Origin: Rebecca billardiae RCC1528
Taxonomy: Eukaryota > Protista > Haptophyta
NCBI GenBank assembly: GCA_965240325.2
Contig: OZ251228.1
Coordinates: 868,001-932,000 of the forward strand
Length of the DNA stretch: 64,000 nucleotides
Direction: 5' to 3'
The notes below the pieces were generated by a model. The model worked only from the letters and a program-made list of their open reading frames with translations, made no database searches and was not told the DNA's origin. Made by a program: the position numbers and the translations under genes. Of this stretch, positions 4,033 to 64,000 are shown one piece after another (positions within the stretch are counted from its first letter, which is position 1; the number at the start of each line of letters is the position of its first letter).

Positions 4033-5255
4033 TCAGAACACGATGGTGTCGAGCATCGTGCCGAGCGCCTGGATGATGTTCGAGCTCATGAGCTTGAGCA
4101 CGTCCTGCGCAGCGCGCACGGCCGACAGCGCGCGCGGGGCGCGTGGGCGGCGTGCGGCTGAGCGCGCGACATGGGTCGCCCCTGCGCGCGCGCGTGCGCC
4201 GCGCGCGTCGCGCCGCGTCGCGTCGCGCGCACGTCCTCGATGCGCTTCTTCGCGTCGATCTTGCCCACGTTGTGCACGACGAGCTTCTCGGCGTCCATCG
4301 ACATCTCCTGCTGCACGGCCTTCTCGTACGCGGCCGAGAGCTTGCGCATGTCCTCGACGACCTGCTCGGTCTCGTCGGCCTGCTCGGAGTAGTCGTCCAC
4401 CTTCAGGCCCGCCGTCCACGACTTTTTGTGCAGGTTCATGAGCATCTTCTGCTCGAGCTCGTTCTTGCGGTACGAGATGGCGATGGAGTAGTAGTGCCGG
4501 TTGAGCCCGTGGATGAGCGCCTGGATGGAGGGCTTGTTCAGGTGGCCGATGTTCGAGGTGGTCTGCCGCGGCTCCTGCCCGAGCATGATCAGCTGCGGGT
4601 TGATCGACCTGAACGCGTCGATCACGACCTTCCCCTTCACCGACTGGATCGGGTCGATCACCACCGCCACTGCGCGCTGATTCAACGCCTCAAACGACTG
4701 CTGCGTGTTGATGTCCACGCCCGACAGCCAGCACCCAAAGCCCGGGTGCGAGTGGTACCAGCCCACGACCATCTCGGGCCGCCCGGTCTGCTTGAGCATG
4801 TCGAGCATTTTCGTCTGAAACACGGGGTCCACCGCCTCCACGCTCACGCCCGTCCCCGTCTGCGGCATCGCGAACACGTCGATGCACTTGACCGTGTACT
4901 CGTCCACAAACTCGCCCAGCATCAGCCCCATCACCTCCATGGGCACGCCGGCACGGCCTGCGCGCGGCGCGGCAGGAGGAGGGGTGGTGCGCAGCGGTGA
5001 CGACCACGGGCGCGCTCGGGCGGCGGGACGTGACGCGCGGGTGCAGCTGCGCTCGCGTGCGCGCCGCGCGCTGCGCTCGGACGCTGCCGGCCAAAGCTCG
5101 AGCGCCGCGCGCGCCGCCGCACCGTGCTTGAGCATTTTGAGCAGCGCCATCGACGAGACGTAGACCATCTCGGCCGTGTCCACCACGGGCGCGTCAGGCG
5201 GGGGCGCGCCGCCGCCCTGCGCCTGCGCCTGGAACAACCGCTGGATGCGGTCCAT
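4033..5255 (-). CDS. RPN11: 26S proteasome lid deubiquitinase Rpn11 (PSMD14); exons 5255-5123, 4957-4233, 4104-4033
   Basis: [38 protein letters not shown] motif [18 protein letters not shown]-terminus [22 protein letters not shown] introns 4958-5122 and 4105-4232 restore the conserved protein. Confidence 0.98.
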
Positions 5256-5452
5256 CGTGAGAGCGGTCGCCGCGCTTGCCGCCGCCGCGTCAAGCTTGCG
5301 CAAGCGGCGCGCAGCGGACCACGATGGCGGCTGGCGCAAGACGCAAGCGAAGACTTGGGATTTCCATTTTCGTCCGCCGCCATTTCTTTTGCTGCCATTT
5401 CTTTTTCTCCGCGTGGACGTGACCCCCAGCCTGCTGCGAGACGACGCGCGGC
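5256..5452. promoter_or_regulatory. Putative bidirectional promoter, RPN11/REX4
   Basis: The divergent ATGs (5255 and 5453) are separated by only 197 bp, with a pyrimidine-rich core at ~5360-5410. Confidence 0.55.
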
Positions 5453-6595
5453 ATGGGGAAGCGCGCCCGCGACGATGGCGGCGCTCAGCCGAAGCGAGCA
5501 GCCGCAAGGCGAAGTGGCAAGGGCAAGAATGCCCCGGTGGCCAAGCCACACTCGCACGCTGCGCCAAGTGCCCAAGCGGCAGGTGGGCAGCCAGCGCCTC
5601 GCGAGCCGGCGGCCGGCGCAGCCCGGCGCGCGGCCGCGCCCGTCGTGCAGCCCAACTGGGAGAGGCTGAAGGCGCAGCTCGCGGGTGCCAGTGCGAAGGA
5701 CGGCTCGCGTCCAGCAGAGCCCGACGTCGCCGGGCAGCGCGGCGCGAGCCCGAGCGCCAAGGACGACGGGCCGGCGCCGCTGACCGATCTCCTCGCCGTC
5801 GACTGCGAGATGGTCGGCGTCGGCCCGGACGGCGAGCGCTCGGCGCTGGCGCGCGTGGTGGTCGTGAATGCGGCCGGCCGCAAGGTGTACGACGCGCTCG
5901 TGCGCCCGCGCGAACGCGTCACCGACTACCGCACCTTCGTCACGGGCCTCGTCGCGCGCGACCTGAGCGGGGCGGCCGCGCGCGACTTCTTCGAGGTGCA
6001 GAAGGAAGTGGCGGAGCTCACGCGCGGGCGGACGCTGGTGGGGCACGCGCTGCACAACGACCTCGCGGCACTGATGCTCACGCACCCGAAGCACCTCGTG
6101 CGCGACACGAGCCAGTACGCGCCGCTGCGCACTGTCGCGAGCGCGCGCGCAGGCAAGCCGGGCAAGAGCCGGCCGCGAGCGCTGCGCAAGCTCGCCGCGG
6201 AGGTGCTGGGCATGGAGATCCAGAGCGGCGCGCACGACCCGGCCGAGGACGCGATCGCGTCGCTCAGGCTGTACCAGCGCTACCAGAAGGAGTGGGAGCG
6301 CGCGCTGCGCGCCGGGCCCGAGCGCCGCGCGGCGATGATCAAGGGCGCGCGCGTGAAGAAGCGCTCCAAGCAGCCGCTGCGAAGTGGCGCGCGCGCTGCC
6401 GGCAGCGGGCGTGGGCGCGAGCGCGGCACGAGCGGCCGAGAGCCGCGGCCAGGCGCGCGCCCCAAGGCCTCCGCAGCGCACGGCTCGGCATTGGACGATG
6501 GCGGTCACGCCGCGCGCGTGCAGGCAGCTTTGCCGGCACCGCGGCCCGTCTCTCGCGCGGGCACGAAGCTGTCGCGGCCGGCATTTCTCCACTGA
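5453..6595 (+). CDS. REX4: RNA exonuclease 4 (DEDDh, REX4/REXO4)
   Basis: NWERLK N-terminal motif, [50 protein letters not shown]. Confidence 0.95.
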
Positions 6596-10445: not shown

Positions 10446-12989
10446 TCACTTATCGATCTCGCTGCCGCGCTCATCCGTATCACTGGCGCCCCCGGCAATG
10501 TCGTCACCACCGTCAGCGCTGGCATCGGTGGCCGCGTCACCGTCGATTGTGCTCCGCCTTCGATCATCGCCGGTGCCGCCCACGATCGGAGTGTCATGCC
10601 CAGCCTGGACTTGCGGCGCGCCGTCCGCGGCACCACGCGGCGAGGTCGGCCCCTCGACATCCTCGTCCCTCTGCGCAAGCTTCTCGTCCAAGTCGAAGGC
10701 CACGTCCACCAGCTCGACGAGCCGCGCCACCCACTTGTCCGCCGCGGCCGCCTCCACGTCCGTGTGCTTCCAGCGCGCTGCCGAGCCCTTGCGCTCGCCT
10801 GCGGGCGGAGGCGGGGCGCGCGGGGAGCGGCGCGGAGGCTGAGCGGCGGTGCGCGAGCGCGGCGAGGCGCGGCGTGTCCGCGCGCGCGCGCACCGAGCCT
10901 CGCCTGCACGCCCGCCGCAAAGTCGGCCGCGCCGATCAGCTGCTGGTTGAGCGCGAGCTCGGTGAGCAGGCACGCGCGCAGGCTGGAGCGCCGCTCGTAG
11001 CTCGCGCTCAGCGCGCGCCTGCACACGACGAGCGCGGCCGGCGCGCACGTCTCCAGCCGCGCCTCGCACGCCTCCAGCCACTCGAGCGACGCGCGCAGCC
11101 GCGCGTCGCCGGCGTGCGCCGAGGCCGCGGGCGCGCGCTTGCGCACCTCGTCGCGCGAGCAGCTGAGCGCCTGCAGCGCCTGCAACAGGCGGCCGCAGCG
11201 GCAGCGGCACGCGCGGCGCGCGCGGACGGCGCGGCGCGGGGCGGTGCGCTCGGCGTGGGGTGGCGCGTGCAGGGCGGCGCGGCGCGCGGGGCGGCGCACT
11301 GCCCACCTGCTCGAGGTCGGGCTGGCCGAAGATCGCGTCGATGCGCGCCTGCACGCGCGCGAGCGTCGAGTGCGCGCGCAGCGGCTCGCTGAGCGCCGCC
11401 AGCAGCGCGTCGAGCGCTCGCATCTCCACGCGCCGCAGCTGCTCGGCGAGGGCGGGCACGCTGGGCTCGGGGACGTGCGCCGTGGCGAGCCCGGCGTACA
11501 GCGCGTCGGGCGCGCTCAGCCGCGCGCCGCTCAGCGTGGCGTACATCCCGACGAAGCCCGGCGGGTGCGTGGCGAAGTGGTGGAGCGCGCCCGCATCCGG
11601 ACACAGCCCGATCAAGCACTCGGGCATGCCCACGCTGGCGCGGCCGCTCAGCACGCGCCGGTTGGCGGCGAGGAAGAGGCCGAGGCCGGCGCCGAGCGCG
11701 AGGCCGTCGGCGATCGCGACGACGGGCTTGCGCCGCGCCACCTCCGCCACCGCCGCCAGCGCCGCGTACTCGAGGTGCAGGAAGCACGCGCGCTCTGACA
11801 CGGACGGCAGCTGCGCGATGCAGCGCACGTCGCCGCCCGCCGAGAACGCGCGCTCGTCCTCCGAGCGGATGAGCAGCGCGCGCACGGAGGGGTCGTCCGC
11901 CGCGGCGGTGGCGACGTCGAGGATCTGGCCGAGCATCCCCGCGTCCAGCGCGTTCAGCTGCGAGCCGCGTGCGAGCACGAGCTCCGTCAGCCCGTTGGGG
12001 TGCGTGTGCACGAGCACGCCGCTGCGGCGCGGCCGCGGCTGCGGCGGCTGGCCGGCCGCCGCCGCCGCCGCCGCCGACGCGTCGGCGGGCACGTCCGCCG
12101 CGCCGCCCTCGAGCAGCGGGCGGAGCGCCGAGAGCGTGCGCCAGCTGCGATCGCCGTCCACGAGCCGCTGGTGGATCACGCGGTCGACCGCCGCGCCCAT
12201 CGCGAGCGTCTGCTCAGCCGAGTAGGAGTGCGCGGCGAGCAGCGCCTCGGCCCACGAGGGCGGCGCGTCCGCGCCGCCCTCGGCGTGCGCGTCGCCCGGG
12301 TCGGCGCGCGCGGCGGGGTCGGCGTGCTCATCGTCGTCCAGCACCTCGTCCTCCCAAGGGGCGCCCTCGGCCAGCGCGTCGTCGCCCACGCTGCACGCGC
12401 TGCGCAGCTCGACGAGCAGGGGCAAGATGCGCTCCGCGCGCGTGCGCCGCAGCAGCCGGCTCGCACGCGCGGCGGTGAGCGCACACGCATCGGCGAGCTC
12501 GGGCTGGCCGAGCTGGCGGTGGGTGGACCACGTCGCCGTGCTCATCACCAGGCTTCGCACCAGCGCGAGCTGCGCGTCCGGGGGTGCCTCCGCGAGCGCG
12601 CGCTCCAGCATGGCGTGCACGCGCGGACGCTCGGCGAGCGGCAGGGCTGGGTCGGTGAGGTACGAGGCGAAGAAGCCGCGCGCGCCGTTGGACGCGCTGA
12701 ACACGTGGCGCATCGCGGTCTGAAACTCCGCCGGCGGCTCGCAGCCCCCGGCCGACGCGGCCTCCAGGGCTGCGCACAGCCGCGCGCCGATGCGGCTCGC
12801 CTCGTCAAACGTGGCGCGCCGGATCTCGTCGCGCGTGGGGAGCGAGGCGGCGGAGGCCGCGCCCCGCGAGGGCGGCGGCGTGGACAAGGCGACGATCACG
12901 CTCGTCCGGCCGCCCTGCGACAGCCGTCGAGCCGCCGCCGGGCCGCGGGACGCCCCGACGGCCGAAAGGACGGCCAGTGCAGGCAGCAT
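10446..12989 (-). CDS. Crotonase-fold 3-hydroxyisobutyryl-CoA hydrolase-like protein with an extra N-terminal domain; exons ~12989-11307, 11179-10894, 10798-10446
   Basis: LNALD, RAFSAGGDV, KPVVAIADGLALGAGLGL, MPECLIGLCPDAG, GARL...DALYAGLAT. Splicing of GT-AG introns 11180-11306 and 10799-10893 gives DFAAGVQARLGERKGSAARW, matching the HIBCH C-terminal DF.EGVRA.L.DK...P.W. Hydrophobic N-terminus MLPALAVLSAVG. Confidence 0.85.
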   Translation of the reverse strand: MLPALAVLSAVGASRGPAAARRLSQGGRTSVIVALSTPPPSRGAASAASLPTRDEIRRATFDEASRIGARLCAALEAASAGGCEPPAEFQTAMRHVFSASNGARGFFASYLTDPALPLAERPRVHAMLERALAEAPPDAQLALVRSLVMSTATWSTHRQLGQPELADACALTAARASRLLRRTRAERILPLLVELRSACSVGDDALAEGAPWEDEVLDDDEHADPAARADPGDAHAEGGADAPPSWAEALLAAHSYSAEQTLAMGAAVDRVIHQRLVDGDRSWRTLSALRPLLEGGAADVPADASAAAAAAAGQPPQPRPRRSGVLVHTHPNGLTELVLARGSQLNALDAGMLGQILDVATAAADDPSVRALLIRSEDERAFSAGGDVRCIAQLPSVSERACFLHLEYAALAAVAEVARRKPVVAIADGLALGAGLGLFLAANRRVLSGRASVGMPECLIGLCPDAGALHHFATHPPGFVGMYATLSGARLSAPDALYAGLATAHVPEPSVPALAEQLRRVEMRALDALLAALSEPLRAHSTLARVQARIDAIFGQPDLEQVGSAPPRAPRRPARATPRRAHRPAPRRPRAPRVPLPLRPPVAGAAGAQLLARRGAQARARGLGARRRRAAARVARVAGGVRGAAGDVRAGRARRVQARAERELRAALQPARVPAHRARAQPAADRRGRLCGGRAGEARCARARTRRASPRSRTAAQPPRRSPRAPPPPAGERKGSAARWKHTDVEAAAADKWVARLVELVDVAFDLDEKLAQRDEDVEGPTSPRGAADGAPQVQAGHDTPIVGGTGDDRRRSTIDGDAATDASADGGDDIAGGASDTDERGSEIDK

Positions 12990-13066
12990 GGCGTCGGCCA
13001 CGTCGATCTCAGTCCTGCAGCTTTTGGGCAGCTTGAAGCTGTGGCCTGTCGTCAGTATATGGAGTT

Positions 13067-13107
13067 TGCTAAGAGTCACGGCTCGATGATTCGATGATGA
13101 TTTGCCA
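13067..13107. repeat. Split repeat A, terminal copy
   Basis: TGCTAAGAGTCACGGCTCGATGATT[CGATGATGATT]TGCCA; matches 15615-15644 apart from the bracketed 11-nt micro-duplication. Confidence 0.9.
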
Positions 13108-13776
13108 GGCAGCTACGTTAATCATCAGACAGAGGGGCAGCAGTCCGGTCCGCCCAGACGACGAGTGGCCATGTCTTCCAGCGCCTCGCGTTCGCGAGGC
13201 GTGCCCGAAACAGCTACACACTCACCGGTGCCCTGGGGCACCGGCGCAACCCGCATCCAACACTCCGCATATCGCAGACACGACATATCCACCCGCGCTT
13301 GCACACGCACGCCCCCCCCCCGCCTGCTTGCTGACCATGAAAGGACTGGCCCCGGGTGCGGACGCCAAGCGCATGCTCATCCCGACACGACGGCGAACAC
13401 CTGCGGTGTGCCTGTGCGGAGGCACTGGGGAGCGACACGCGGAGTGTGGGCCGCCCTCCTTCCTGAGCAGCGCCCGGCCCTCAGGTGGAGACCGCGCCCG
13501 TCCCGGCCTCCCCGCGGCGGCCGCGAGCCCCCCCCCCCCCCCCCCCTTTTCCCCATCCTGCCCGTTTCGCGACAAACCCCTCTCCCCCCGAAACGCACGA
13601 CGGGCCGCCGTGGTCCGGGGGACCGGCGGGGCCACTCCGGACCTGGGTTTTGAAATTTGATTTCAACCCCGCGCGCCGAAATGCCTTTGGCACCAGCACC
13701 GACCTCGCTCGCACCGCAGTGCTTCCGCACCCGCCCCCCGGCCCTCCGCAGCCCCGCGCCCGCCACACCGGCCACC

Positions 13777-14847
13777 ATGCCCCCTTACCAGCACGGCTTT
13801 TTCCGCGACCGTCTCAACAGCAGGAGCGCCTTGAGCTTCTTCCCCTCTTCCAACAACTTCGAGCGCGGGCTGCAGGTGGAACGGCCGAGCACCCCCACCG
13901 CCAGGCGGGATGCGGGCCAGCAGATGTGCACGACGATGATCAAGCTGAGCGCGCGCTGCCTGAGCGACGTGGCGCCCAACTCGCAAGGCGGGCGACTGCT
14001 CTCAGGACTCACCCAGGACCCCAAAGGCAATAAGCACGTTTTCTCCTTCACCGGCTCGGTGCTCGAGAACATGACCATCTGCCGCCGCCTGGCCACCAGC
14101 CTGTGCATGCCGAACATTCTCACGGCGTGCACCACGGAGCTCACGCAGGAGATGCTCGCGCTGTCGGCGGCCGACCTCGCAACCCAGGCGAAGGACGTGT
14201 CCCTCACGCTCCCGGTTAGCCCCACGATGACGCTCGTGCAGTTTCACAGGGCCCTCTACGAGCAGATCGTGCCCGACATCAACAAGTACGTGACCAACGG
14301 TGAGCACGTCGAGACCAACATCTACTCCGGCGGTGTGAACCTGATCTTCCTCCGCCTGCGTTTCATGCCCATCGACCCCGAGCACCCCATCTTCTTCGCG
14401 CCGCTCAAGCCGAGCCGCCGCATCGCCGGCGCCGCCCGCGTCCCACACAACCTGTGGGGCGTGCCGCCCGCGCCGCCTGTGCCGCCCGCGCCGCCCGCCG
14501 CTGCGCGCCGCCCTGCTCCTCAGCCGGCCGACCAACAGGCGGCGGACCCCGCCGGCCCGGAGGCGGAGGAGCCCGAGGGGGAGGGTTCGGACGATGCCAT
14601 CCCGCCACCCCAGCCACCAACCGCGGCCGCGCCGTCGGACGGGCCCGAGGTGCAACAGGCCAGGCCGGCGCTCGGGGAGTCCAACTACCGCCTGGTCCTG
14701 CCCCCCGGCGCCGCGGCAGCCGGCAAGCGCGCGGCGACCGAGCCGTCCACGCCGGCGGAGGAGGATGGGCCCTCCTCCGCTGGCGGGAGCGACGCCAAGC
14801 CGGCCAAGCAGGCTCGCACCGCGTCCCTCGGCGACCCCCCCCCGTGA
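13777..14847 (+). CDS. Element-borne protein of unknown function (globular ~205-aa N-terminal part plus Pro/Ala/acidic disordered tail)
   Basis: ATG in GCCACCATG context; strong C/G third-position bias; complex non-repetitive protein sequence; no motif recognised. Confidence 0.7.
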   Translation: MPPYQHGFFRDRLNSRSALSFFPSSNNFERGLQVERPSTPTARRDAGQQMCTTMIKLSARCLSDVAPNSQGGRLLSGLTQDPKGNKHVFSFTGSVLENMTICRRLATSLCMPNILTACTTELTQEMLALSAADLATQAKDVSLTLPVSPTMTLVQFHRALYEQIVPDINKYVTNGEHVETNIYSGGVNLIFLRLRFMPIDPEHPIFFAPLKPSRRIAGAARVPHNLWGVPPAPPVPPAPPAAARRPAPQPADQQAADPAGPEAEEPEGEGSDDAIPPPQPPTAAAPSDGPEVQQARPALGESNYRLVLPPGAAAAGKRAATEPSTPAEEDGPSSAGGSDAKPAKQARTASLGDPPP

Positions 14848-14941
14848 CCTGGCTGCCGCCGCGCCGCAGTCGCTGGCGTAGAGCCGCGCGCGGCGCTGGC
14901 GCGCCAGACGCGCCCGGTTGGGCAGCGCAGGCACCCTCAGC

Positions 14942-15061
14942 GGCCAGGACGACGACTTCCTCAACGGCAAGGGCGACGACTTCCTCTGCGGCCAGGGCGA
15001 CGACTTCCTCAACGGCAAGGACGACGACTTCCTCAACGGCAAGGGCGACGACTCCCTCAAC
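14942..15061 (+). repeat. 24-bp minisatellite x5 (GGCMAGGRCGACGACTTCCTCAAC)
   Basis: Five consecutive units; translation GQDDDFLN/GKGDDFLC/GQGDDFLN/GKDDDFLN/GKGDDSLN. Confidence 0.93.
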
Positions 15062-15496
15062 TCGGCAAGGCCACTAGGCCGCGCACACCGGCCCGGGCGA
15101 CCACATCCACTACCTGCACTACGGCATCAACTTGAACAGCCTCGGACGACGACGACACGGGCAACTACATGATGACCAAGGCCGACGACGACTGCAAAAC
15201 AGCGGCATCCCCGGGCGCCTACTAGTACTACCTCAGTGACCGTGTGATCAGCATCGGTTACGACGACTCCCTCACCCGCGGCCAACGCGCTCCGACATCC
15301 TCCATTAACTCCATTCAGTACTTCGACAGACGAATCAGGAGAGCTGCGCCCTCGTGCCTGTGTCTTTAAATCATAGAATTAGTCCCAGATGGGGCCGGCT
15401 GGCCCTCAGCGTCGGTCCGCGGCTGATCCACGCCCAGTGGGTGCGGTCGCTGCGGGCCCCCACTCCAAAACGAGCATCAGGGGGGGGCGTGGTGGG

Positions 15497-15644
15497 TTAG
15501 GGTGGCGTCGTGACGCCACCCAAAACGAGCACAGGCGGGAGGGACCCGATCGACGGGTCCGGACCATGAGCTCGCCGCGTACTCGCAAACCCACGTTACC
15601 CGTAACATAGCATTTGCTAAGAGTCACGGCTCGATGATTTGCCA
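15497..15644. repeat. Internal B+A junction of the split repeats
   Basis: B (15497-15612), TT, A (15615-15644); the junction reads TAGCA-TT-TGCTA, i.e. inverted arms around a TT spacer. Confidence 0.93.
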
Positions 15645-15783
15645 CCAAAGAGCACGGGTGCGCGCCGAGGATGGCCAACAGCGGCGGGGCATGCAGGATG
15701 CCGTACCAGCCGAGCGTGCGGCTGTGGGGAGCGGACTGGCGTTGATCGCCATCCGGGCGATGTCGACGTCGACGTCGGCATCG

Positions 15784-17019
15784 TTACTCGTCGGACGTGT
15801 GGTTGTCCTCGTCCAGTTCGGCGTGAGCGGCTCGCGCGTGGTCGCGCGGCGGCGCGGGGCGGGCGGTGCCCGCACGTGGGGCAGTCGCCCCTGCAGGTCG
15901 GTCTCTGCCGACGGGTCGGTCCTTGTGGACATCGGGGGTGGTCCCCGGGGGACCAGGCGGCTGCCGCCCCAGCGGTTGCACCGGAAGCTTGGTCGGCTTC
16001 ACCGTGCGCGCGAGGGCGGCCGCAGCAGCCTGCTGCTTAGCCACGGCAGCGTCGACCGCCCGATCGGCGGCGCGCAGGATCTCGTCCACTTGCGGAGAGA
16101 TCTCCGGGAGAGCCGGGCGGTGCAGATCCTCGATCTGCTTGGCGCGTAGCGCATACGCAGCGTGCTGCTCGTCGCCAGGCTGCATGTTTGCAGCGAATCG
16201 CGAGCGAAGGATAGGTACCGCTTTGACGGAGCCAGTGATTTCCAGAAGCTTATCGATGGTATTCCAGCAAGCTTCGAGCTCGATTTCGAGCTCCTCAGAA
16301 TCGAGGTCGTTGCGACCGAAGCTGTCCAGCAGATATTGGATCGTACCGGCCACGTTGTACAGGTAGTATTCCACCGCGTTGGAGTAAATGTACCCCTTGA
16401 AAAGCGCCGATTGGCGCGAGTAGTCGCGTCCCATCACCCATAGGTTCCGAGCTGCGTCGGTATCTGGCACCATCAGCCGTGGGACAGTCCGGTCGCGAGG
16501 GTCCACTCCGGCGTCCACGCGGCCCGGATTCCCATCAACGAAGCGACAAAAACGCCGATTCGTCGAAGGATCCAGACGCCGCGCGTCCTCGTCGTGCCTG
16601 GTAGCCGCCGCCGAGAGCCGCTCGTTCGCCTGTCGCAGCTCACCGTTCGTCGACTCCAACTCCCGTAGTCGCGATTCCATTCGCCCCAGGCGATCCTCCA
16701 GTACCGCCTCGTCCACTGCGAGCCCACGTGCGTTTGCGTTGTGCGCTCGCGGCGGTAGCGTGTGTTCACCGGGTAGCCGGTTCTCAGCACCACGCTGAAG
16801 GCGACCGCCAGCACCGGTAGGGCCAGCGTCGTCCGGTTCAGCGTCTTCGTCACCAGGAGCCCCCACCGAGGGCTCGCTGCCGGTAACGGCACCATCGGCG
16901 CCGGGCGACCCACCGTCGTCGCCAGGCGTGAGAGAGTGGAGGCCGGATTCGCCCTCCGCTCCCCCGATTGGGGTGGCTGGTGCTCCTCGTGTGCCGCGCC
17001 GGCGGCGTGAGGAGCCCAT
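15784..17019 (-). CDS. Gag-like ORF1 of the split-repeat element (411 aa)
   Basis: Starts ~90 bp inside terminal repeat B (MGSSRRRR). Disordered N-terminus, coiled coil (LEDRLGRMESRLRELESTNGELRQANERL), helical core and basic Pro-rich tail. Third-position usage is less GC-skewed than host genes. The Gag call is positional and compositional only. Confidence 0.65.
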   Translation of the reverse strand: MGSSRRRRGTRGAPATPIGGAEGESGLHSLTPGDDGGSPGADGAVTGSEPSVGAPGDEDAEPDDAGPTGAGGRLQRGAENRLPGEHTLPPRAHNANARGLAVDEAVLEDRLGRMESRLRELESTNGELRQANERLSAAATRHDEDARRLDPSTNRRFCRFVDGNPGRVDAGVDPRDRTVPRLMVPDTDAARNLWVMGRDYSRQSALFKGYIYSNAVEYYLYNVAGTIQYLLDSFGRNDLDSEELEIELEACWNTIDKLLEITGSVKAVPILRSRFAANMQPGDEQHAAYALRAKQIEDLHRPALPEISPQVDEILRAADRAVDAAVAKQQAAAAALARTVKPTKLPVQPLGRQPPGPPGTTPDVHKDRPVGRDRPAGATAPRAGTARPAPPRDHARAAHAELDEDNHTSDE

Positions 17020-17110
17020 GCCGATCCGTTTGGGTCCTCGGCCCTGTCGTCCGATTGGACTGGCCGGTGGTAGCTGCCCACGCGCCGCCGAGGCGGCGCG
17101 GAGCGCTCGT

Positions 17111-17226
17111 TTAGGGTGGCGTCGTGACGCCACCCAAAACGAGCACAGGCGGGAGGGACCCGATCGACGGGTCCGGACCATGAGCTCGCCGCGTACTCGC
17201 AAACCCACGTTACCCGTAACATAGCA
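17111..17226. repeat. Split repeat B, terminal copy (116 bp)
   Basis: Identical to 15497-15612. Hairpins GGGTGGCGTC-GT-GACGCCACCC, GGACCCG-ATCGA-CGGGTCC and GTTAC-CC-GTAAC. Confidence 0.95.
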
Positions 17227-17287
17227 GTTCAATCGTCCGTCCGTTCAATTTCAACTTGGCCAACGGCCAATTGAGCCTCACCACGAC

Positions 17288-19129
17288 ATGGAGCCCTCGC
17301 TCGCGGACGATGGCGCCGCCGCCGCGTCCCCAGTCTTCGAGGTGCAGTGCGCGCTGTGTGCCGAACGTATCCGCAGCCAGCCGTGGGCGCGGCTCGCCTG
17401 CGGCGACGAGCGCGTCGCGAACAAGGCGTGCCTCTCCCAGCGCGCGCTCGCGTCCGGGTACGGCCGGCCGGGATGCAAGCGCGTGACAAAGGCGGCGTCG
17501 GCGACGACGAAGTACGACGGCATTCACGAGCTGCGCACGTGGCGTCATATCGCCGTCGTCGCGACGTGCGCCGGCTGCGCCGCGCCGGATGGGTCGACAG
17601 CCGTGCAGCGCGGGCCGCCCCCCAGCGACACGGCGGCAGCTCCGACAGCGACGGCTGGCCTGACGCTGGGCGACCTGCCGACGGACGTGGTCTCGCGCAT
17701 CCTCTGCTGCGTCGAGAGTACGCATGATCTGGCGAGTGTCAACGCCACGTCGCGCCTCTTCCGCGACGGGCCCGGCGAACGCTCGCCGGTGGAGCACGCG
17801 CTGCGCGAGCGCGCGCGGCAGCGCGGGCACGAGGGCGCGCTGCCGGCGGCTCTGCCCGCGCACGCGTGCTCGTGGCGGGCGGAGCTGTTCGCGCGCGAGC
17901 GCGTGCTGGAGCACGCGGATATGCACGCGTGCGTGGCCGTATCCGGCAACACCGAACCGGGTACGGCGTTCAGCGCGTTTGTGGACGCATCGGGTGGGAT
18001 GCACACCTGCGGTGAGCAGAATCAGGACGAAGACGGAGGCCCACACATGGCACTGGGCCATCCGGAGCTGCGCGGCTCGCCCGTGCCCGTGCCGACGCGC
18101 GTGTCGTCGCTCTCGGCGGTATGCATGCGAGCGGTGGCTGCTGGCTGTAAACACCTGCTTGCGCTGAGCGACTGTGGTGCCGTGTACGCGTGCGGTTCGA
18201 ATGCCTTCGGCGCGCTGGGCCTGGGCGGAGGCGATTCCGCCGATCCATACGCGTTCGCTGCGCTGGGCATGAGCAACATGGGTCCCGTCGTGGGAATCGC
18301 TGCTGCTACATTCCGCAGCCACGCGATCACCGCAGCGGGCGGTGTGTATAGCTGGGGATGTAACGAGGACGGCGAGCTCGGCCTCGGCGACACTGAGGAC
18401 CGGCTGGAGCCTGTGCGCGTCGAGGCGCTGGACGGCGTGCGCGTGGGCGGGCTCGCTGCGGGGGGCATGCACACGCTGCTACTCTCTACGGACGGTGTCG
18501 TTTACGCTTGCGGTGAAGATAGTGAATTTGATTCCTTTGCTCTCGGCATTGACGACTCGAACCAGCTGGGCCACGGCGACCGTCAAGATCATCTCACGCC
18601 GAGGCGCATCGAGGCGCTGCAGGGCGTGCGCGCCGTGCACGTGAGTGCGGGCATGAGCCACAGCCTGGTGGTCGATGCCACAGGCAGCGTGCACTCGTTC
18701 GGGAGAGGGGGAGGTGGTTCCCTTGGCCATGGGGACTTCTCCGACGAACCAGTGCCCAGGCGCATCGAGGCGCTGCAGGGCGTGCGCATCGTGCGTGCCA
18801 GGGCGGGCCTTGGGTGCAGCGCGGTGATGGGCGCGGACGGCAGCGTGTACACGTTTGGCTACAACGACTGCGGCCTGCTCGGCATCGGCTCGGCTGGCGC
18901 AAACCAGCCGCTTCCGGTGCGCGTGCACGCCCCAGCGCATGGCCAATTTGTGGACTGCTTTCTCAACAGCTGGCAGACGCTTTGGATCGCGTCAGACGGC
19001 GGCGCATATTCGCACGGCAAGCAGTCGGCCGCGCTCGGCCACGGCGTGAACCATGCCGATGGGATGGACGACCTCTTCTCTCCTGCGCGGATTGCGCAGC
19101 TCCCACCCCTGCGGCGCCGGGGTGCGTAG
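17288..19129 (+). CDS. F-box-like plus RCC1-repeat beta-propeller protein
   Basis: LGDLPTDVVSRIL (F-box-like); repeated V.AG..H.L.L...G.VY.[CW]G....GQLG.G; PRRIEALQGV twice at a 156-nt spacing; Cys-rich N-terminus. Confidence 0.9.
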   Translation: MEPSLADDGAAAASPVFEVQCALCAERIRSQPWARLACGDERVANKACLSQRALASGYGRPGCKRVTKAASATTKYDGIHELRTWRHIAVVATCAGCAAPDGSTAVQRGPPPSDTAAAPTATAGLTLGDLPTDVVSRILCCVESTHDLASVNATSRLFRDGPGERSPVEHALRERARQRGHEGALPAALPAHACSWRAELFARERVLEHADMHACVAVSGNTEPGTAFSAFVDASGGMHTCGEQNQDEDGGPHMALGHPELRGSPVPVPTRVSSLSAVCMRAVAAGCKHLLALSDCGAVYACGSNAFGALGLGGGDSADPYAFAALGMSNMGPVVGIAAATFRSHAITAAGGVYSWGCNEDGELGLGDTEDRLEPVRVEALDGVRVGGLAAGGMHTLLLSTDGVVYACGEDSEFDSFALGIDDSNQLGHGDRQDHLTPRRIEALQGVRAVHVSAGMSHSLVVDATGSVHSFGRGGGGSLGHGDFSDEPVPRRIEALQGVRIVRARAGLGCSAVMGADGSVYTFGYNDCGLLGIGSAGANQPLPVRVHAPAHGQFVDCFLNSWQTLWIASDGGAYSHGKQSAALGHGVNHADGMDDLFSPARIAQLPPLRRRGA

Positions 19130-19326: not shown

Positions 19327-19720
19327 TGAGCCTCGGTCGACCGCTGCTTGCTTGGCCTTGCTTGCGGGACCAGATAGTTGCATTCGTTGAGGCCGTTGCG
19401 CAGCTGGGCGCTTGGCGCGCGGTCGCACTCACTGCTCCGCGCGGACCAAAGCCGACAGCCGACTAACGCTATTGTCTCGGTCTATGCACGCACGAGTTCG
19501 CGCGCGGAATGTCAATGTCATTGTTGCCAATGAGCCTCGGCTCAGTCGGTCCATTGCTAGGCTCATGGGACCAGATGCGGCTGCATTGGCCAGTTGAGGC
19601 CGTGACTCGGCGCGCTGCAGCTGGGCGCTTGGCGCGCGGTCGCACTCACTGCTCCGCGCGACCTAAAGCCGACAGGCGACTATCGTCTATGCAAGATATT
19701 TCGCATGCTCGAATTCGCGC
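19327..19720. repeat. Degenerate ~205-217-bp tandem duplication (2 copies)
   Basis: CAGCTGGGCGCTTGGCGCGCGGTCGCACTCACTGCTCCGCGCG at 19401 and 19618; ATGAGCCTCGG at ~19327 and ~19530. Confidence 0.8.
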
Positions 19721-21778: not shown

Positions 21779-22439
21779 ATGGCGGCTCTCGGCGCAGCCG
21801 CCCTCGGCCTGTCGGCTCTCGACACGGCAATCGGCAAATCGAGCCACCAAGCGACCATGGAGGTGCGCCTCGTGGATGAGAAGGTGCAGCAGCTGAAGGC
21901 GATCTCCAATTTGTCGGCGCTCATCGGTGGTTTCGCGATGGTGTCCATTGTTGAGCTCAACATCACCCCCGGCCACCCGCAGGTGCTCATGTTTGCGTTT
22001 GGCACGATGGCAGCAACTGTGATCGCGCTCATGATGTTTTCTATGGTGCGTCGCAGCCCGCGAGCCCCACTGATCCCTTCTCTCGCGCCATGGGCAGATA
22101 TCATATCGACCGTTCCGTGGCCACGCGCCCCGCGCCGTTTTGCCCTCACTGTGCCAGGTGCTGTGCTCGCTGATCATGGTGTACATCCTCAACTACCGCA
22201 CCGTGCACCTCAAGCCGTTTGACCAGATCGCATGGAACAGCCGCTGCGAGGCGGACTGGCGTCGAGCCTTCTCGGCCTTCAAGTCGGGCGTGCCGTGCTT
22301 CCTGCTCAACCTGGCTCTGCTCGCGTGGGTGCAATTTCAGGACTACTACGCCGCCGCCGCGGCTATCACTGCTATCGCACTGGCGGCCGTGTTCGTCTGG
22401 CTGTGGTACGTGAAGCAGAAGTGGGCCGAGGCACGATGA
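21779..22439 (+). CDS. ORAI: Orai-family (CRAC) Ca2+ channel subunit; exons 21779-22045 and 22158-22439
   Basis: TM1 QLKAISNLSALIGGFAMVSIVE aligns to Orai [22 protein letters not shown]; TM3 GVPCFLLNLALLAWVQF aligns to GTLLFLAEVVLLCWVKF; four TM segments; GT-AG intron 22046-22157. Confidence 0.9.

Positions 22440-22872: not shown

Positions 22873-22876
<4 letters not shown>
22780..22876. repeat. ~98-bp structured dispersed repeat, copy 2
   Basis: Matches 9279-9377; abuts the TA tract. Confidence 0.92.

Positions 22877-22939
<63 letters not shown>
22876..22939. repeat. (TA)32 microsatellite
   Basis: Perfect TA run immediately preceding element copy 2. Confidence 0.98.
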
Positions 22940-22943
<4 letters not shown>

Positions 22944-25829: not shown

Positions 25830-28800
25830 CAGCCCAGCAGCGGCAGCCATCCCGTCGGCGACGACTGCCGGAAACTACCAGTCAGAGACCAGCCTGCAGC
25901 CACCGCTCGGCGCACTCCTCATCGGAGCGCGCGGCGAGAACGCGCGCGGAGACAGCCACGCTCGGCAGCGTCGAGCGCCGATGCCGCGAGCGGCTGCGCA
26001 GCCGTGCGCGCGTCTCCGTCCGCACGCAGCGCCCAACAAGCTCGTCCGAGCAGCGGCAGCCATTCCGTCGCCGCGCGGCGGCCATTCCGTCACCTCGCGG
26101 CGGCCATTCCGTAAACAGCCTGCAGCCACCGCTCGGCGCGCATCTCGGAGCGCGCGGCGAGGACGCCGGCGGAGACACAGCCACGCTTGGCAGCGTCGAG
26201 CGCCGATGCCGCGAGCGGCTGCGCCGCCGTGCGCGCGTCTCCGCCTGCACGTCGCGCCTAACAAGCTCGTCCCAGCAGCGGCGGCCATTCCGTCACCTCG
26301 CGGCGGCCATTCCGTCACCGGCCTGCAGCCACCGCTCGGCGCGCATCTCGGAGCGCGTGGCGAGGACGCCGGCGGAGACACAGCCACGCTTGGCAGCGTC
26401 GAGCGCCGATGCCGCGAGCGGCTGCGCCGCCGTGCGCGCGTCTCCGCCTGCACGCCGCGCCCAACAGCTCGTCCCAGCAGCGGCAGCCATTCCGTCGCCG
26501 CGCGGCGGCCATTCCGTCACCTCGCGGCGGCCATTCCGTCACCGGCCTGCAGCCACCGCTCGGCGCGCATCTCGGAGCGCGCGGCGAGGACGCCGGCGGA
26601 GACACAGCCACGCTCGGCAGCGTCGAGCGCCGATGCCGCCAGCGGCTGCGCCGCCGTGCGCGCGTCTCCGCCCGCACGTTGCGCCCAGCAAGCTCGTCCC
26701 AGCAGCGGCAGCCATTCCGTCGCCGCGCGGCGGCCATTCCGTCACCTCGCGGCGGCCATTCCGTCACCGGCCTGCAGCCACCGCTCGGCGCGCATCTCGG
26801 AGCGCGCGGCGAGGACGCCGGCGGAGACACAGCCACGCTTGGCAGCGTCGAGCGCCGATGCCGCGAGCGGCTGCGCCGCCGTGCTCGCGTCTCCGCCCAC
26901 ACGCCGCGCCCAACAGCTCGTCCCAGCAGCGGCAGCCATTCCGTCGCCTCGCGGCGGCCATTCCGTCACCTCGCGGCGGCCATTCCGTCACCGGCCTGCA
27001 GCCACCGCTCGGCGCGCATCTCGGAGCGCGTGGCGAGGACGCCGGCGGAGACACAGCCACGCTTGGCAGCGTCGAGCGCCGATGCCGCGAGCGGCTGCGC
27101 CGCCGTGCGCGCGTCTCCGCCTGCACGCCGCGCCCAACAGCTCGTCCCAGCAGCGGCAGCCATTGCGTCACCTCGCGGCGGCCATTCCGTCACCTCGCGG
27201 CGGCCATTCCGTAAACAGCCTGCAGCCACCGCTCGGCGCGCTCGTCGGAGCGCGCGGCGAGGACGCGCGCGGAGACACAGCCACGCTCGGCAGCGTCGAA
27301 CGCCGATGCCGCGAGCGGCTGCGTCGCCGTGCGCGCGTCTCCGCCTGCACGCTGCGCCCAGCAAGCTCGTCCCAGCAGCGGCAGCCATTCCGTCGCCTCG
27401 CGGCGGCCATTCCGTCACCTCGCGGCGGCCATTCCGTCACCGGCCTGCAGCCACCGCTCGGCGCGCATCTCGGAGCGCGTGGCGAGGACGCCGGCGGAGA
27501 CACAGCCACGCTTGGCAGCGTCGAGCGCCGATGCCGCGAGCGGCTGCGCCGCCGTGCGCGCGTCTCCGCCTGCACGCCGCGCCCAACAGCTCGTCCCAGC
27601 AGCGGCAGCCATTCCGTCGCCGCGCGGCGGCCATTCCGTCACCTCGCGGCGGCCATTCCGTAAACAGCCTGCAGCCACCGCTCGGCGCGCTCGTCGGAGC
27701 GCGCGGCGAGGACGCGCGCGGAGACACAGCCACGCTCGGCAGCGTCGAGCGCCGATGCCGCGAGCGGCTGCGTCGCCGTGCGCGCGTCTCCGCCTGCACG
27801 CTGCGCCCAACAGCTCGTCCCAGCAGCGGCAGCCATTCCGTCGCCTCGCGGCGGCCATTCCGTCACCTCGCGGCGGCCATTCCGTCACCGGCCTGCAGCC
27901 ACCGCTCGGCGCGCATCTCGGAGCGCGTGGCGAGGACGCCGGCGGAGACACAGCCACGCTTGGCAGCGTCGAGCGCCGATGCCGCGAGCGGCTGCGCCGC
28001 CGTGCGCGCGTCTCCGCCTGCACGCCGCGCCCAACAGCTCGTCCCAGCAGCGGCAGCCATTCCGTCACCTCGCGGCGGCCATTCCGTCACCTCGCGGCGG
28101 CCATTCCGTCACCGGCCTGCAGCCACCGCTCGGCGCGCATCTCGGAGCGCGCGGCGAGGACGCCGGCGGAGACACAGCCACGCTTGGCAGCGTCGAGCGC
28201 CGATGCCGCGAGCGGCTGCGCCGCCGTGCGCGCGTCTCCGCCTGCACGCTGCGCCCAACAGCTCGTCCCAGCAGCGGCAGCCATTCCGTCACCTCGCGGC
28301 GGCCATTCCGTCACCGGCCTGCAGCCACAGCTCGGCGCGCATCTCGGAGCGCGTGGCGAGGACGCCGGCGGAGACACAGCCACGCTTGGCAGCGTCGAGC
28401 TCCGATGCCGCGAGCGGCTGCGCCGCCGTGCGCGCGTCTCCGCCTGCACGCCGCGCCCAACAGCTCGTCCCAGCAGCGGCAGCCATTCCGTCGCCGCGCG
28501 GCGGCCATTCCGTCACCTCGCGGCGGCCATTCCGTCACCGGCCTGCAGCCACCGCTCGGCGCGCATCTCGGAGCGCGCGGCGAGGACGCCGGCGGAGACA
28601 CAGCCACGCTCAGCGTCGAGCGCCGATGCCCCGAGCCGCTGCGCCGCCGTGCGCGCGTCTCCGCCTGCACGCCGCGCCCAACAGCTCGTCCCAGCAGCGG
28701 CAGCCATTCCGTCGCCGCGCGGCGGCCATTCCGTCACCTCGCGGCGGCCATTCCGTCACCGGCCTGCAGCCACCGCTCGGCGCGCATCTCGGAGCGCGCG

Positions 28801-61800: not shown

Positions 61801-64000
61801 CCGATGCCGCGAGCGGCTGCGCCGCCGTGCGCGCGTCTCCGCCCGCACGTTGCGCCCAGCAGCTCGTCCCAGCAGCGGCAGCCATTCCGTCACCTCGCGG
61901 CGGCCATTCCGTCACCGGCCTGCAGCCACTGCTCGGCGCGCATCTCGGAGCGCGCGGCGAGGACGCCGGCGGAGACACAGCCACGCTCGGCAGCGTCGAG
62001 CACCGATGCCGCGAGCCGCTGCGCCACCGTGCGCGCGTCTCCGCCTGCACGCCGCGCCCAACAGCTCGGCCCAGCAGTGGCAGCCATTCTGTCGCCGCGC
62101 GGCGGCCATTCCGTCACCTCGCGGCGGCCATTCCGTCACCGGCCTGCAGCCACCGCTCGGCGCGCATCTCGGAGCGCGCGGCGAGGACGCCGGCGGAGAT
62201 ACAGCCACGCTTGGCAGCGTCGAGCGCCGCGTCGCGAGCGGCTGCGCCGCCGTGCGCGCGTCTCCGCCCACACGCCGCGCCCAACAGCTCGTCCCAGCAG
62301 CGGCAGCCATTCCGTCGCCGCGCGGCGGCCATTCCGTCACCTCGCGGCGGCCATTCCGTCACCGGCCTGCAGGCACCGCTCGGCGCGCATCTCGAAGCGC
62401 GCGGCGAGGACGCCGGCGGAGACACAGCCACGCTTGGCAGCGTCGAGCGCCGATGCCGCGAGCGGCTGCGCCGCCGTGCGCGCGTCTCCGCCTGCACGCC
62501 GCGCCCAACAGCTCGTCCCAGCAGCGGCAGCCATTCTGTCGCCGCGCGGCGGCCATTCCGTCACCTCGCGGCGGCCATTCCGTCACCGGCCTGCAGCCAC
62601 CGCTCGGCGCGCATCTCGGAGCGCGCGGCGAGGACGCCGGCGGAGACACAGCCACGCTCGGCAAAGTCGAACACCGATGCCGCGAGCGGCTGCGCCGCCG
62701 TGCGCGCGTCTCCGCCCACACGTTGCGCCCAACAGCTCGTCCCAGCAGCGGCAGCCATTCCGTCGCCGCGCGGCGGCCATTCCGTCACCTCGCGGCGGCC
62801 ATTCCGTCACCGGCCTGCAGCCACTGCTCGGCGCGCATCTCGGAGCGCGCGGCGAGGACGCCGGCGGAGACACAGCCACGCTCGGCAAAGTCGAGCGCTG
62901 ATGCCGCGAGTGGCTGCGCCGCCGTGCGCGCAACTCCGCCTGCACGTTGCGCCCAGCAAGCTCGTCCCAGCAGCGGCAGCCATTCCGTCGCCGCGCGGCG
63001 GCCATTCCGTCACCTCGCGGCGGCCATTCCGTCACCGGCCTGCAGCCACCGCTCGGCGCGCATCTCGGAGCGCGCGGCGAGGACGCCGGCGGAGACACAG
63101 CCACGCTCGGCAAAGTCGAGCGCCGATGTCGCGAGCGGCTGCGCCGCCGTGCGCGCGTCTCCGCCCGCACGTTGCGCCCAGCAAGCTCGTCCCAGCAGCG
63201 GCAGCCATTCCGCCGCCGCGCGGCGGCCATTCCGTCACCTCGCGGCGGCCATTCCGTCACCGGCCTGCAGCCAACGCTCGGCGCGCATCTCGGAGCGCGC
63301 GGCGAGGACGCCGGCGAAGACACAGCCACGCTTGGCAAAGTCGAGCCCCGATGCGGCCAGCGGCTGCGCCGCCGTGCGCGCAACTCCGCCCGCACGTTGC
63401 GCCCAGCAAGCTCGTCCCAGCAGCGGCAGCCATTCCGTCGCCGCGCGGCGGCCATTCCGTCACCTCGCGGCGGCCATTCCGTCACCGGCCTGCAGCCACC
63501 GCTCGGCGCGCATCTCGGAGCGCGCGGCGAGGACGCCGGCGGAGACACAGCCACGCTCGGCAAAGTCGAGCACCGATGCCGCGAGCGGCTGCGCCGCCGT
63601 GCGCGCGTCTCCGCCCACACGTTGCGCCCAACAGCTCGTCCCAGCAGCGGCAGCCATTCCGTCGCCGCGCGGCGGCCATTCCGTCACCTCGCGGCGGCCA
63701 TTCCGTCACCGGCCTGCAGCCACTGCTCGGCGCGCATCTCGGAGCGCGCGGCGAGGACGCCGGCGGAGACACAGCCACGCTCGGCAAAGTCGAGCGCCGA
63801 TGCCGCGAGTGGCTGCGCCGCCGTGCGCGCAACTCCGCCCGCACGTTGCGCCCAGCAAGCTCGTCCCAGCAGCGGCAGCCATTCCGTCGCCGCGCGGCGG
63901 CCATTCCGTCACCTCGCGGCGGCCATTCCGTCACCGGCCTGCAGCCACCGCTCGGCGCGCATCTCGGAGCGCGCGGCGAGGACGCCGGCGAAGACACAGC
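25830..64000 (+). repeat. GC-rich tandem satellite, ~224-bp monomer (variants 225, 223, 221, 202 bp), ~170 head-to-tail copies, runs off the window
   Basis: Monomer CCTGCAGCCACCGCTCGGCGCGCATCTCGGAG...CCATTCCGTCACCGG recurs without interruption; internal 22-bp subrepeat GCGGCCATTCCGTCACCTCGCG; periodicity is visible in the ORF track (steps of 224/225/221/202). Confidence 0.99.

Follow-up and report, generated by a model that had tools for sequence, protein, structure and literature searches.

What kind of unit is a 4.16 kb block of DNA in which two short sequences each occur twice in direct orientation, split in such a way that the end of one copy meets the beginning of another in the middle of the block? 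The block lies in a stretch of 64,000 nucleotides from the haptophyte Rebecca billardiae RCC1528 (GenBank assembly GCA_965240325.2, contig OZ251228.1, positions 868,001 to 932,000 of the forward strand). We refer to this whole stretch as the window, and all positions given here are counted from its first nucleotide. The two repeats are named A and B, and the order of parts is A1, a first open reading frame on the plus strand (ORF1), a 24-bp minisatellite, B1 abutting A2, a second open reading frame on the minus strand (ORF2) and B2. Judging from the sequence, we tentatively favour the reading that 13065-17226/17229 is a split-direct-repeat element of DIRS-order type, young, non-autonomous and mobilised in trans; the probability we attach to this reading falls a little short of even.

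The split repeats and their junctions

The repeat pattern is exact and far beyond chance. The two copies of A agree at all 27 positions and the two copies of B at all 116, there are no differences in these 143 nt of non-coding DNA, and B1 ends where A2 begins. In 100 dinucleotide shuffles no matches were obtained for the A/B repeats. Each repeat has two copies in the window, and a search of the remainder of the window for similarity to the element found none. A previous interpretation of this DNA, made from its letters alone and called here the sequence-only reading, had described the same split order with a 116-bp identity of B, and both descriptions are correct. It had started the copies of A at 13067 and 15615; the repeat is there, but these positions mark a TG within it and the identity begins two nucleotides further left, at 13065 and 15613. 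The absence of differences between the repeat copies is also consistent with its view that the element is young. A 135-nt repeat family with 94% identity around B corresponds to B with 16 weakly similar bases on its left. Local tandem duplication was one of the findings that, according to the sequence-only reading, would speak against a mobile element. When the two interiors are compared, they show no significant similarity outside A, B and the palindrome of B, and the block is therefore not a simple tandem duplication.

The sequence-only reading had treated the block as an insertion, and its surroundings support this view. The block separates a divergent pair of genes, an enoyl-CoA hydratase gene on the minus strand (first ATG at 12989) and an RCC1/F-box gene (ATG at 17288). 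With the block removed, the two start codons are 75 + 61 = 136 bp apart, and those of another divergent pair in the window, RPN11/RNase_T, are ~198 bp apart. With start codons so close together, the block looks as though it had been inserted into a compact bidirectional promoter. Of the repeat copies, A1 and B2 are found in promoter regions, and A2 and B1 side by side in the 3' region where the genes converge. This mixed placement gives the repeats no consistent regulatory role, and they look like structural ends. Host DNA meets the block at precisely those edges of A and B that adjoin each other inside it.

The junctions themselves are informative. The left junction reads ...GGAG / TTT GCTAAG..., the internal B1/A2 junction ...TAGCA / TTT GCTAAG... 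and the right junction ...TAGCA / GTT CAATC.... Across the internal junction, TAGCA-TT-TGCTA consists of 5-bp inverted half-sites around TT. This small palindrome has the form of a recombinase core site, and we propose that B1/A2 is the image of a circle junction. Of DIRS1-like elements, 23/28 start and end with NTT (ATT, GTT or TTT), in agreement with their 3-bp circle junction, and the trinucleotide at the start often differs by one base from that at the end (PMC3266345, Table 3). On integration, the trinucleotide recombines with the same trinucleotide in the target and no duplication arises (PMC3266345). The NTT end rule of DIRS-order elements is also given in PMC7192593. The junctions found here, TTT/TTT/GTT, fit the NTT rule with one mismatch, and the chance of finding NTT at both outer junctions is ~6e-4, with a TT frequency of 0.024.

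This suggests how an element of the favoured type might move. The whole unit would be transcribed, and reverse transcription would be carried out by the reverse transcriptase (RT) of a partner element, supplied in trans. The internal B1/A2 junction would serve as the template for restoring the untranscribed tips (27 nt of A and 116 nt of B) and for closing the circle. The partner's tyrosine recombinase (YR) would then recombine TTT, located between the TAGCA and TGCTA half-sites, with an NTT target, in this case GTT. After such an exchange, each end would carry a single trinucleotide, and the target would not truly be duplicated. Restoration of the ends from an internal template would explain both the sharp boundaries of the repeats and their identity.

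The same three junctions also fit a 3-bp duplication of GTT. This trinucleotide abuts both ends of a TG...CA block exactly (for flanks that agree over 3 nt, the composition-weighted probability is 0.025), and the ends TGCTA...TAGCA form a perfect 5-bp inverted repeat that can be extended weakly, by eye, to ~11/15. The block could be a composite that travelled in linear form, through the action in trans of a DDE transposase or an integrase. The internal CA-TT-TG would then be left over from a former junction, either head-to-tail or in a circle. Such a history requires no mismatch at the ends and predicts the empty site that the sequence-only reading had expected. However, it leaves the internal repetition of A and B unexplained, with its 2-nt rather than 3-nt spacer, and it has to rely on a very short inverted repeat and on a transposase or integrase that was not found in the window. 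A differs from B, so the ends are not long terminal repeats (LTRs), and LTR-type integrases usually give duplications of 4-6 bp (PMC12440569). We consider a linear DNA composite of this kind improbable. The two kinds of integration predict different empty sites: 14 nt would lie between the outer flanks after removal of a 3-bp duplication, and 15 nt if a trinucleotide core was exchanged.

The junctions also bear on the possibility that the block is not mobile at all. In that case, ORF1 and ORF2 would be two lineage-specific host genes, and A and B would have arisen through local duplication or gene conversion, or through an assembly artefact at a dispersed repeat. There is a single locus in the data and nothing shows movement; the codon usage of ORF1 is fully host-like, and the homologue of ORF2 described below is an expressed transcript, as that of any gene might be. 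Against this, a random duplication would not make the host flanks meet the block at precisely the point of internal B/A abutment. It is at the junctions that the NTT and GTT matches are found, the non-coding repeat copies agree at all 143 nt, A and B have no consistent regulatory role, and the codon usage of ORF2 is outside the host range. A non-mobile origin of the locus thus appears to have little probability.

The two genes and the search for enzymes

The GC content of the window is 65-78%. At such a high GC content, long ORFs arise by chance on every strand, and openness alone is no proof of coding. We compared the codon adaptation index (CAI) of each ORF with the range of six host genes from the window, calculated in a leave-one-out procedure. 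ORF1 has strong codon periodicity, with a GC content of 0.67/0.55/0.89 at codon positions 1/2/3 and a third-position GC content of 0.91 in the first 225 codons. Its CAI is 0.65, inside the host range of 0.53-0.81. By the measure of its codon pattern, ORF1 is truly coding. The protein has ~225 aa that look globular, followed by a Pro/Ala/Glu-rich tail. It has no match in Pfam or among PDB sequences, no homologue in a word-index protein search, also when the globular part was used alone, and no match in viral and prokaryote contigs. The AlphaFold model of ORF1 has a mean confidence score (pLDDT) of 44.8 and is unusable.

In ORF2 the second codon position has the lowest GC content. Its CAI of 0.43 is under those of all six host genes, as would be expected of a gene of foreign origin, and is no better than that of non-coding frames. 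Despite this low CAI, ORF2 is a real gene, to judge from its protein homologue in a marine-protist transcriptome. The homologue is a 224-aa protein from the MMETSP collection of marine-eukaryote transcriptomes that has 47% identity to residues 183-394 of ORF2 (E = 3e-36), and the alignment includes 19 consecutive identical residues. When ORF2 was run in a full HMMER search against 1.84 billion representatives, only two MMETSP transcripts were found, P0001 and its variant P0002. No match to ORF2 was found in the word-index protein search, among PDB sequences (profile search included) or in metagenome, viral and prokaryote contigs. ORF2 is predicted, at moderate confidence, to consist of a long coiled-coil helix followed by a helical domain or bundle, with disorder at the N-terminus and in the tail. 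Its AlphaFold model is poor (pLDDT 48.1), and Foldseek searches of PDB and BFVD gave no match at E <= 1e-3 and only generic helical bundles. The sequence-only reading had described both ORFs as open; the codon periodicity of ORF1 and the homologue of ORF2 show that both are real coding sequence.

The roles that this reading assigned to them fare less well. It had called the first ORF Gag-like, that is, a capsid-like protein of the element, and the second a passenger. ORF1 has no match in Pfam, PDB or the other databases and no CCHC zinc knuckle, and no fold match supports the assignment, the models of the two proteins being poor (pLDDT 45 and 48). Gag-like ORFs of the DIRS order are poorly conserved, and a missing match therefore proves little. 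By codon usage the two roles are reversed, as ORF1 looks host-adapted and ORF2 looks foreign. ORF2 is the likelier of the two to be the element's own gene, in view of its non-host codon usage, its coiled coil and helical domain and its expressed relatives. ORF1, with host-like codon usage and no relatives, is likelier a captured or long-adapted passenger gene. The gap between their CAI values also suggests that the element's two halves come from different sources.

No enzyme of transposition was detected, as the sequence-only reading had stated for RT, RNase H and recombinase. Pfam searches with ORF1, ORF2 and the ten longest of the element's remaining ORFs (133-352 aa) revealed no RT, RNase H, YR or other domain. 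In all six frames of the element, a regular-expression search found no CCHC knuckle and no YxDD in an open frame, and the HxxR...Y motif was absent from both coding frames by the same kind of search. There was no match to PF00589 or to any other family in the element, no tyrosine recombinase in the rest of the non-satellite part of the window, and no transposase, integrase or Rep/helicase was found in the window. PHROG profiles gave no match below E = 0.02, and an Rfam scan of the element at E <= 1 gave no match and hence no ribozyme or tRNA-like part. Sequence words of A and B were absent from viral contigs. The sole metagenome match to a 22-mer of the B hairpin (L001:621-644) was rejected as a chance 24-nt identity in a bacterial-looking contig of 44% GC.

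Comparison with known mobile elements

The closest parallels to the layout are found among YR retrotransposons. The kangaroo element of Volvox carteri and the nematode element Pat1 have split direct repeats in the order A1...B1A2...B2, with the B/A junction in the middle of the element as here, and kangaroo carries an inverted ORF between A2 and B2, the same geometry as that of ORF2 on the minus strand (PMC4157794). Kangaroo and Pat1 encode Gag, RT/RNase H/methyltransferase (MT) and YR, and the inverted ORF of kangaroo is its YR, whereas the ORFs found here are without such domains. The first ORF of Pat1-like elements is a Gag with a zinc knuckle, of which there is none in our element. Ngaro elements have the layout A1-[ORFs]-B1A2B2, in which A2 and B2 are contiguous, but in our element these two are 1.47 kb apart, with a reversed gene in between. 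Ngaro elements always include RT/RNase H and YR, neither of which is encoded here. In Cafeteria burkhardae, with a GC content of ~70%, four types of Ngaro are known and ORF1-deleted variants of 4.3-4.7 kb occur in host DNA. DIRS1-like elements have NTT ends that match a 3-bp circle junction, to be compared with TTT/TTT/GTT here. However, their ends are inverted repeats combined with an internal complementary region, and they encode RT/RNase H/MT and YR, whereas our element has split direct repeats and no enzymes.

A precedent for moving without enzymes of its own is TOC1 of Chlamydomonas reinhardtii, an active non-autonomous element of the DIRS order. The TOC1 repeat is reportedly split between its two ends (described by Day et al. 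in 1988). TOC1 has no sequence relation to our element, which resides in another host, a GC-rich protist that has few introns. An element of the TOC1 type is expected in several copies, alongside an autonomous partner in the genome that encodes RT and YR and has the same termini. The view of the sequence-only reading that the block is a non-autonomous relative of YR retrotransposons is plausible and now better grounded than before. The NTT junctions and the kangaroo-like inverted ORF after the internal junction strengthen this view. As RT/RNase H, YR and MT are all missing, we do not file the element as a PAT or Ngaro element, although it probably works like one in trans.

Two different elements that share their ends and lie head to tail would give an identical pattern. 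In that case, unit 1 (13065-15612, with ORF1) and unit 2 (15613-17226, with ORF2) would be a pair or co-integrate of two non-autonomous elements of one family, in which B and A together make up a 143-bp common region with a cis site. The units could be circle-forming DNA elements, either YR/Crypton-like or rolling-circle/Helentron-like. The second unit could have inserted itself into the first one's junction site; alternatively, the circles could have fused before integration. In both units, an unrelated interior is enclosed by A as the 5' end and the hairpin-rich B as the 3' end, and each unit contains one gene, the two genes having opposite orientations and different codon usage. The B/A site TAGCA-TT-TGCTA is an inverted-repeat site of the kind used by site-specific recombinases. 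A common region, different cargo in each unit and head-to-tail arrays are known from multipartite single-stranded DNA replicons, which resemble the locus in these respects.

Non-autonomous Helitron-type elements usually combine a conserved 5' end of small size with a longer 3' end that contains palindromes. This is a likeness in particular to non-autonomous type 2 Helitrons (Helentrons), in which the longer 3' end bears a hairpin. Type 2 Helitrons start with T and insert upstream of T, and unit 1 fits this description, as it has the 5' T and is followed by T. However, the outer right end is followed by G, unless the boundary shifts by one base. Hairpins at both ends and short, asymmetric terminal inverted repeats would be expected of such elements, and the strong hairpins are confined to B. 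Neither a Rep/helicase nor a YR was found. A canonical Helitron (5'-TC...CTRR-3' with a 3' hairpin, inserted between A and T) is not seen, since the block starts with TTTGCT..., finishes with ...ATAGCA and is flanked by G on both sides. A head-to-tail pair would also require a second insertion that abuts the first exactly, and the fully identical pairs of ends would require two very young copies, whereas identity is automatic for one young split-direct-repeat element. We regard a head-to-tail pair as unlikely, though as a serious alternative. Derivatives of LTR retrotransposons (LARD and TRIM) are a poor match, as the ends A and B are unrelated and the flanking repeat is 3 bp rather than 4-6 bp, although TG...CA is present. 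A terminal-inverted-repeat transposon with a 3-bp duplication would agree with the GTT/GTT flanks and with the inverted repeat, which is perfect over 5 bp and weak beyond, and no transposase was found in the window.

Several observations besides the head-to-tail pattern weigh against the favoured reading of a single split-direct-repeat element mobilised in trans. The element lacks RT, RNase H, MT and YR, the enzymes that define the order, and no partner is seen. There is one copy in 64 kb, and related DNA or protein is absent from the viral, metagenome and prokaryote collections. The TG...CA ends with an exact 3-bp GTT duplication need no mismatch, whereas recombination by a YR has to pair TTT with GTT. 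The NTT rule is documented for DIRS1-like elements, which have inverted repeats, and not for PAT or Ngaro elements. At 27 nt, A is very short. Two intact ORFs without enzyme function, one of them host-like in codon usage, are an unusual cargo.

A further explanation is that the element is autonomous. ORF1, or the family to which ORF2 belongs, would then be a new recombinase or replication initiator acting on the hairpin-rich B/A site, and the locus would be a co-integrate of small circular one-gene replicons of a class not yet described. We think this very improbable.

Features of the element, its surroundings and its significance

Positions of the features discussed here, counted from the first nucleotide of the window
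Feature	Position	Strand	Remark
Left junction trinucleotide TTT	13065..13067	+	GTT at 13064-13066 is the left copy of the target duplication in the alternative reading
A1, 27-nt terminal repeat	13065..13091	+	begins TTT-GCTAAG; TG of the TG...CA reading at 13067
Non-coding leader of unit 1	13092..13776	+	no codon periodicity
ORF1, 356 aa	13777..14847	+	alternative ATG at 13681
24-bp minisatellite	14935..15070	+	5.6 copies, 87% matches, in the spacer 3' of ORF1
Partial B-like fragment in B orientation	15459..15485	+	B positions 19-43, ~23/26 columns, 2 gaps
B1, internal copy of B	15497..15612	+	two strong hairpins; end ...TAGCA
A2, internal copy of A	15613..15639	+	directly abuts B1
ORF2, 411 aa plus stop	17019-15784	-	
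B2, terminal copy of B	17111..17226	+	on the minus strand, 91 nt upstream of the ORF2 ATG
Right junction trinucleotide GTT	17227..17229	+	target-derived, or right copy of a 3-bp duplication

The B copies are rich in hairpins, single-stranded DNA folding giving z-scores of -3.0 for the B1/A2 junction region (15481-15645) and -4.2 for B2. The partial B-like fragment ends 11 nt upstream of B1 and has no counterpart at B2. At B2, the first palindrome extends to the left as far as 17103 (8 extra bases), which gives an interrupted stem of ~18 bp. With the fragment present at B1 only and the extra bases at B2 only, the left edges of the two copies appear to have different histories.

Next to A1 there is an 11-nt insertion (13092-13102) that resembles a local duplication of a GATGAT motif. 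Past this insertion, 6 nt again match the sequence after A2 (13092-13108 compared with 15640-15645), a marginal similarity. A may originally have been ~33 nt long, with one indel since the repeat was formed, and the match could also be due to chance. The leader between A1 and ORF1 contains a run of 19 C (13528-13546). In one frame (14918-15172) the minisatellite is translated into an 8-residue repeat of the type GDDFLNGK; this stretch lacks codon periodicity and is therefore probably non-coding. Internal minisatellites are common in transposable elements.

The window is eukaryote chromosomal DNA with Arf, RPN11, RNase_T, WD40, enoyl-CoA hydratase, RCC1/F-box and Orai genes, at a density of ~1 gene per 2-2.5 kb and with few introns. 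RPN11 (4089-5918, minus strand) and the Orai-like gene (21780-22436, plus strand) are apparently interrupted by short introns; host genes that are spliced entered the searches as single, unjoined open stretches. The open stretch of the enoyl-CoA hydratase gene looks non-coding past residue ~600. A search of the window for tRNA genes found none.

Other repeats occur in the window. An open stretch at 1262-2335 contains an 83-bp tandem duplication (1923-2091, 2 copies, 80% matches), and upstream of it the translation has SRAQLSLPLAA...EADAAEEAAG twice (residues ~2-26 and ~141-165; nucleotides ~1265-1756). Downstream of the RCC1 gene, an intergenic 69-nt direct repeat (19400-19468 and 19617-19685) has two copies at a distance of 217 bp, with 93% identity. 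A (TA)n microsatellite of ~32 units (~22876-22940), striking at a GC content of ~70%, is located downstream of the Orai-like gene. The last 38 kb, from 26278 to the end of the window at 64000, are a satellite array with a transition at 25890-26319. It has a period of 224 bp, a 449-bp higher-order dimer and ~169 copies with 91-94% matches, and its GC content is ~75% with a steady negative GC skew.

What the locus means depends on the copy number of A and B. If both are single-copy, it is merely a curious local repeat. If the favoured reading is true, the insertion splits a bidirectional promoter of ~136 bp, and the two host genes on either side may have been rewired. The locus would also be a rare non-autonomous split-direct-repeat element outside the green algae, and unusual in that it keeps two intact, unrelated genes rather than remnants of enzymes. 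With 27 + 116 nt of cis sequence and a palindromic junction, it would offer a compact test case for recognition in trans by YR retroelements, and it would bear on the transport of host-like genes around a compact protist genome.

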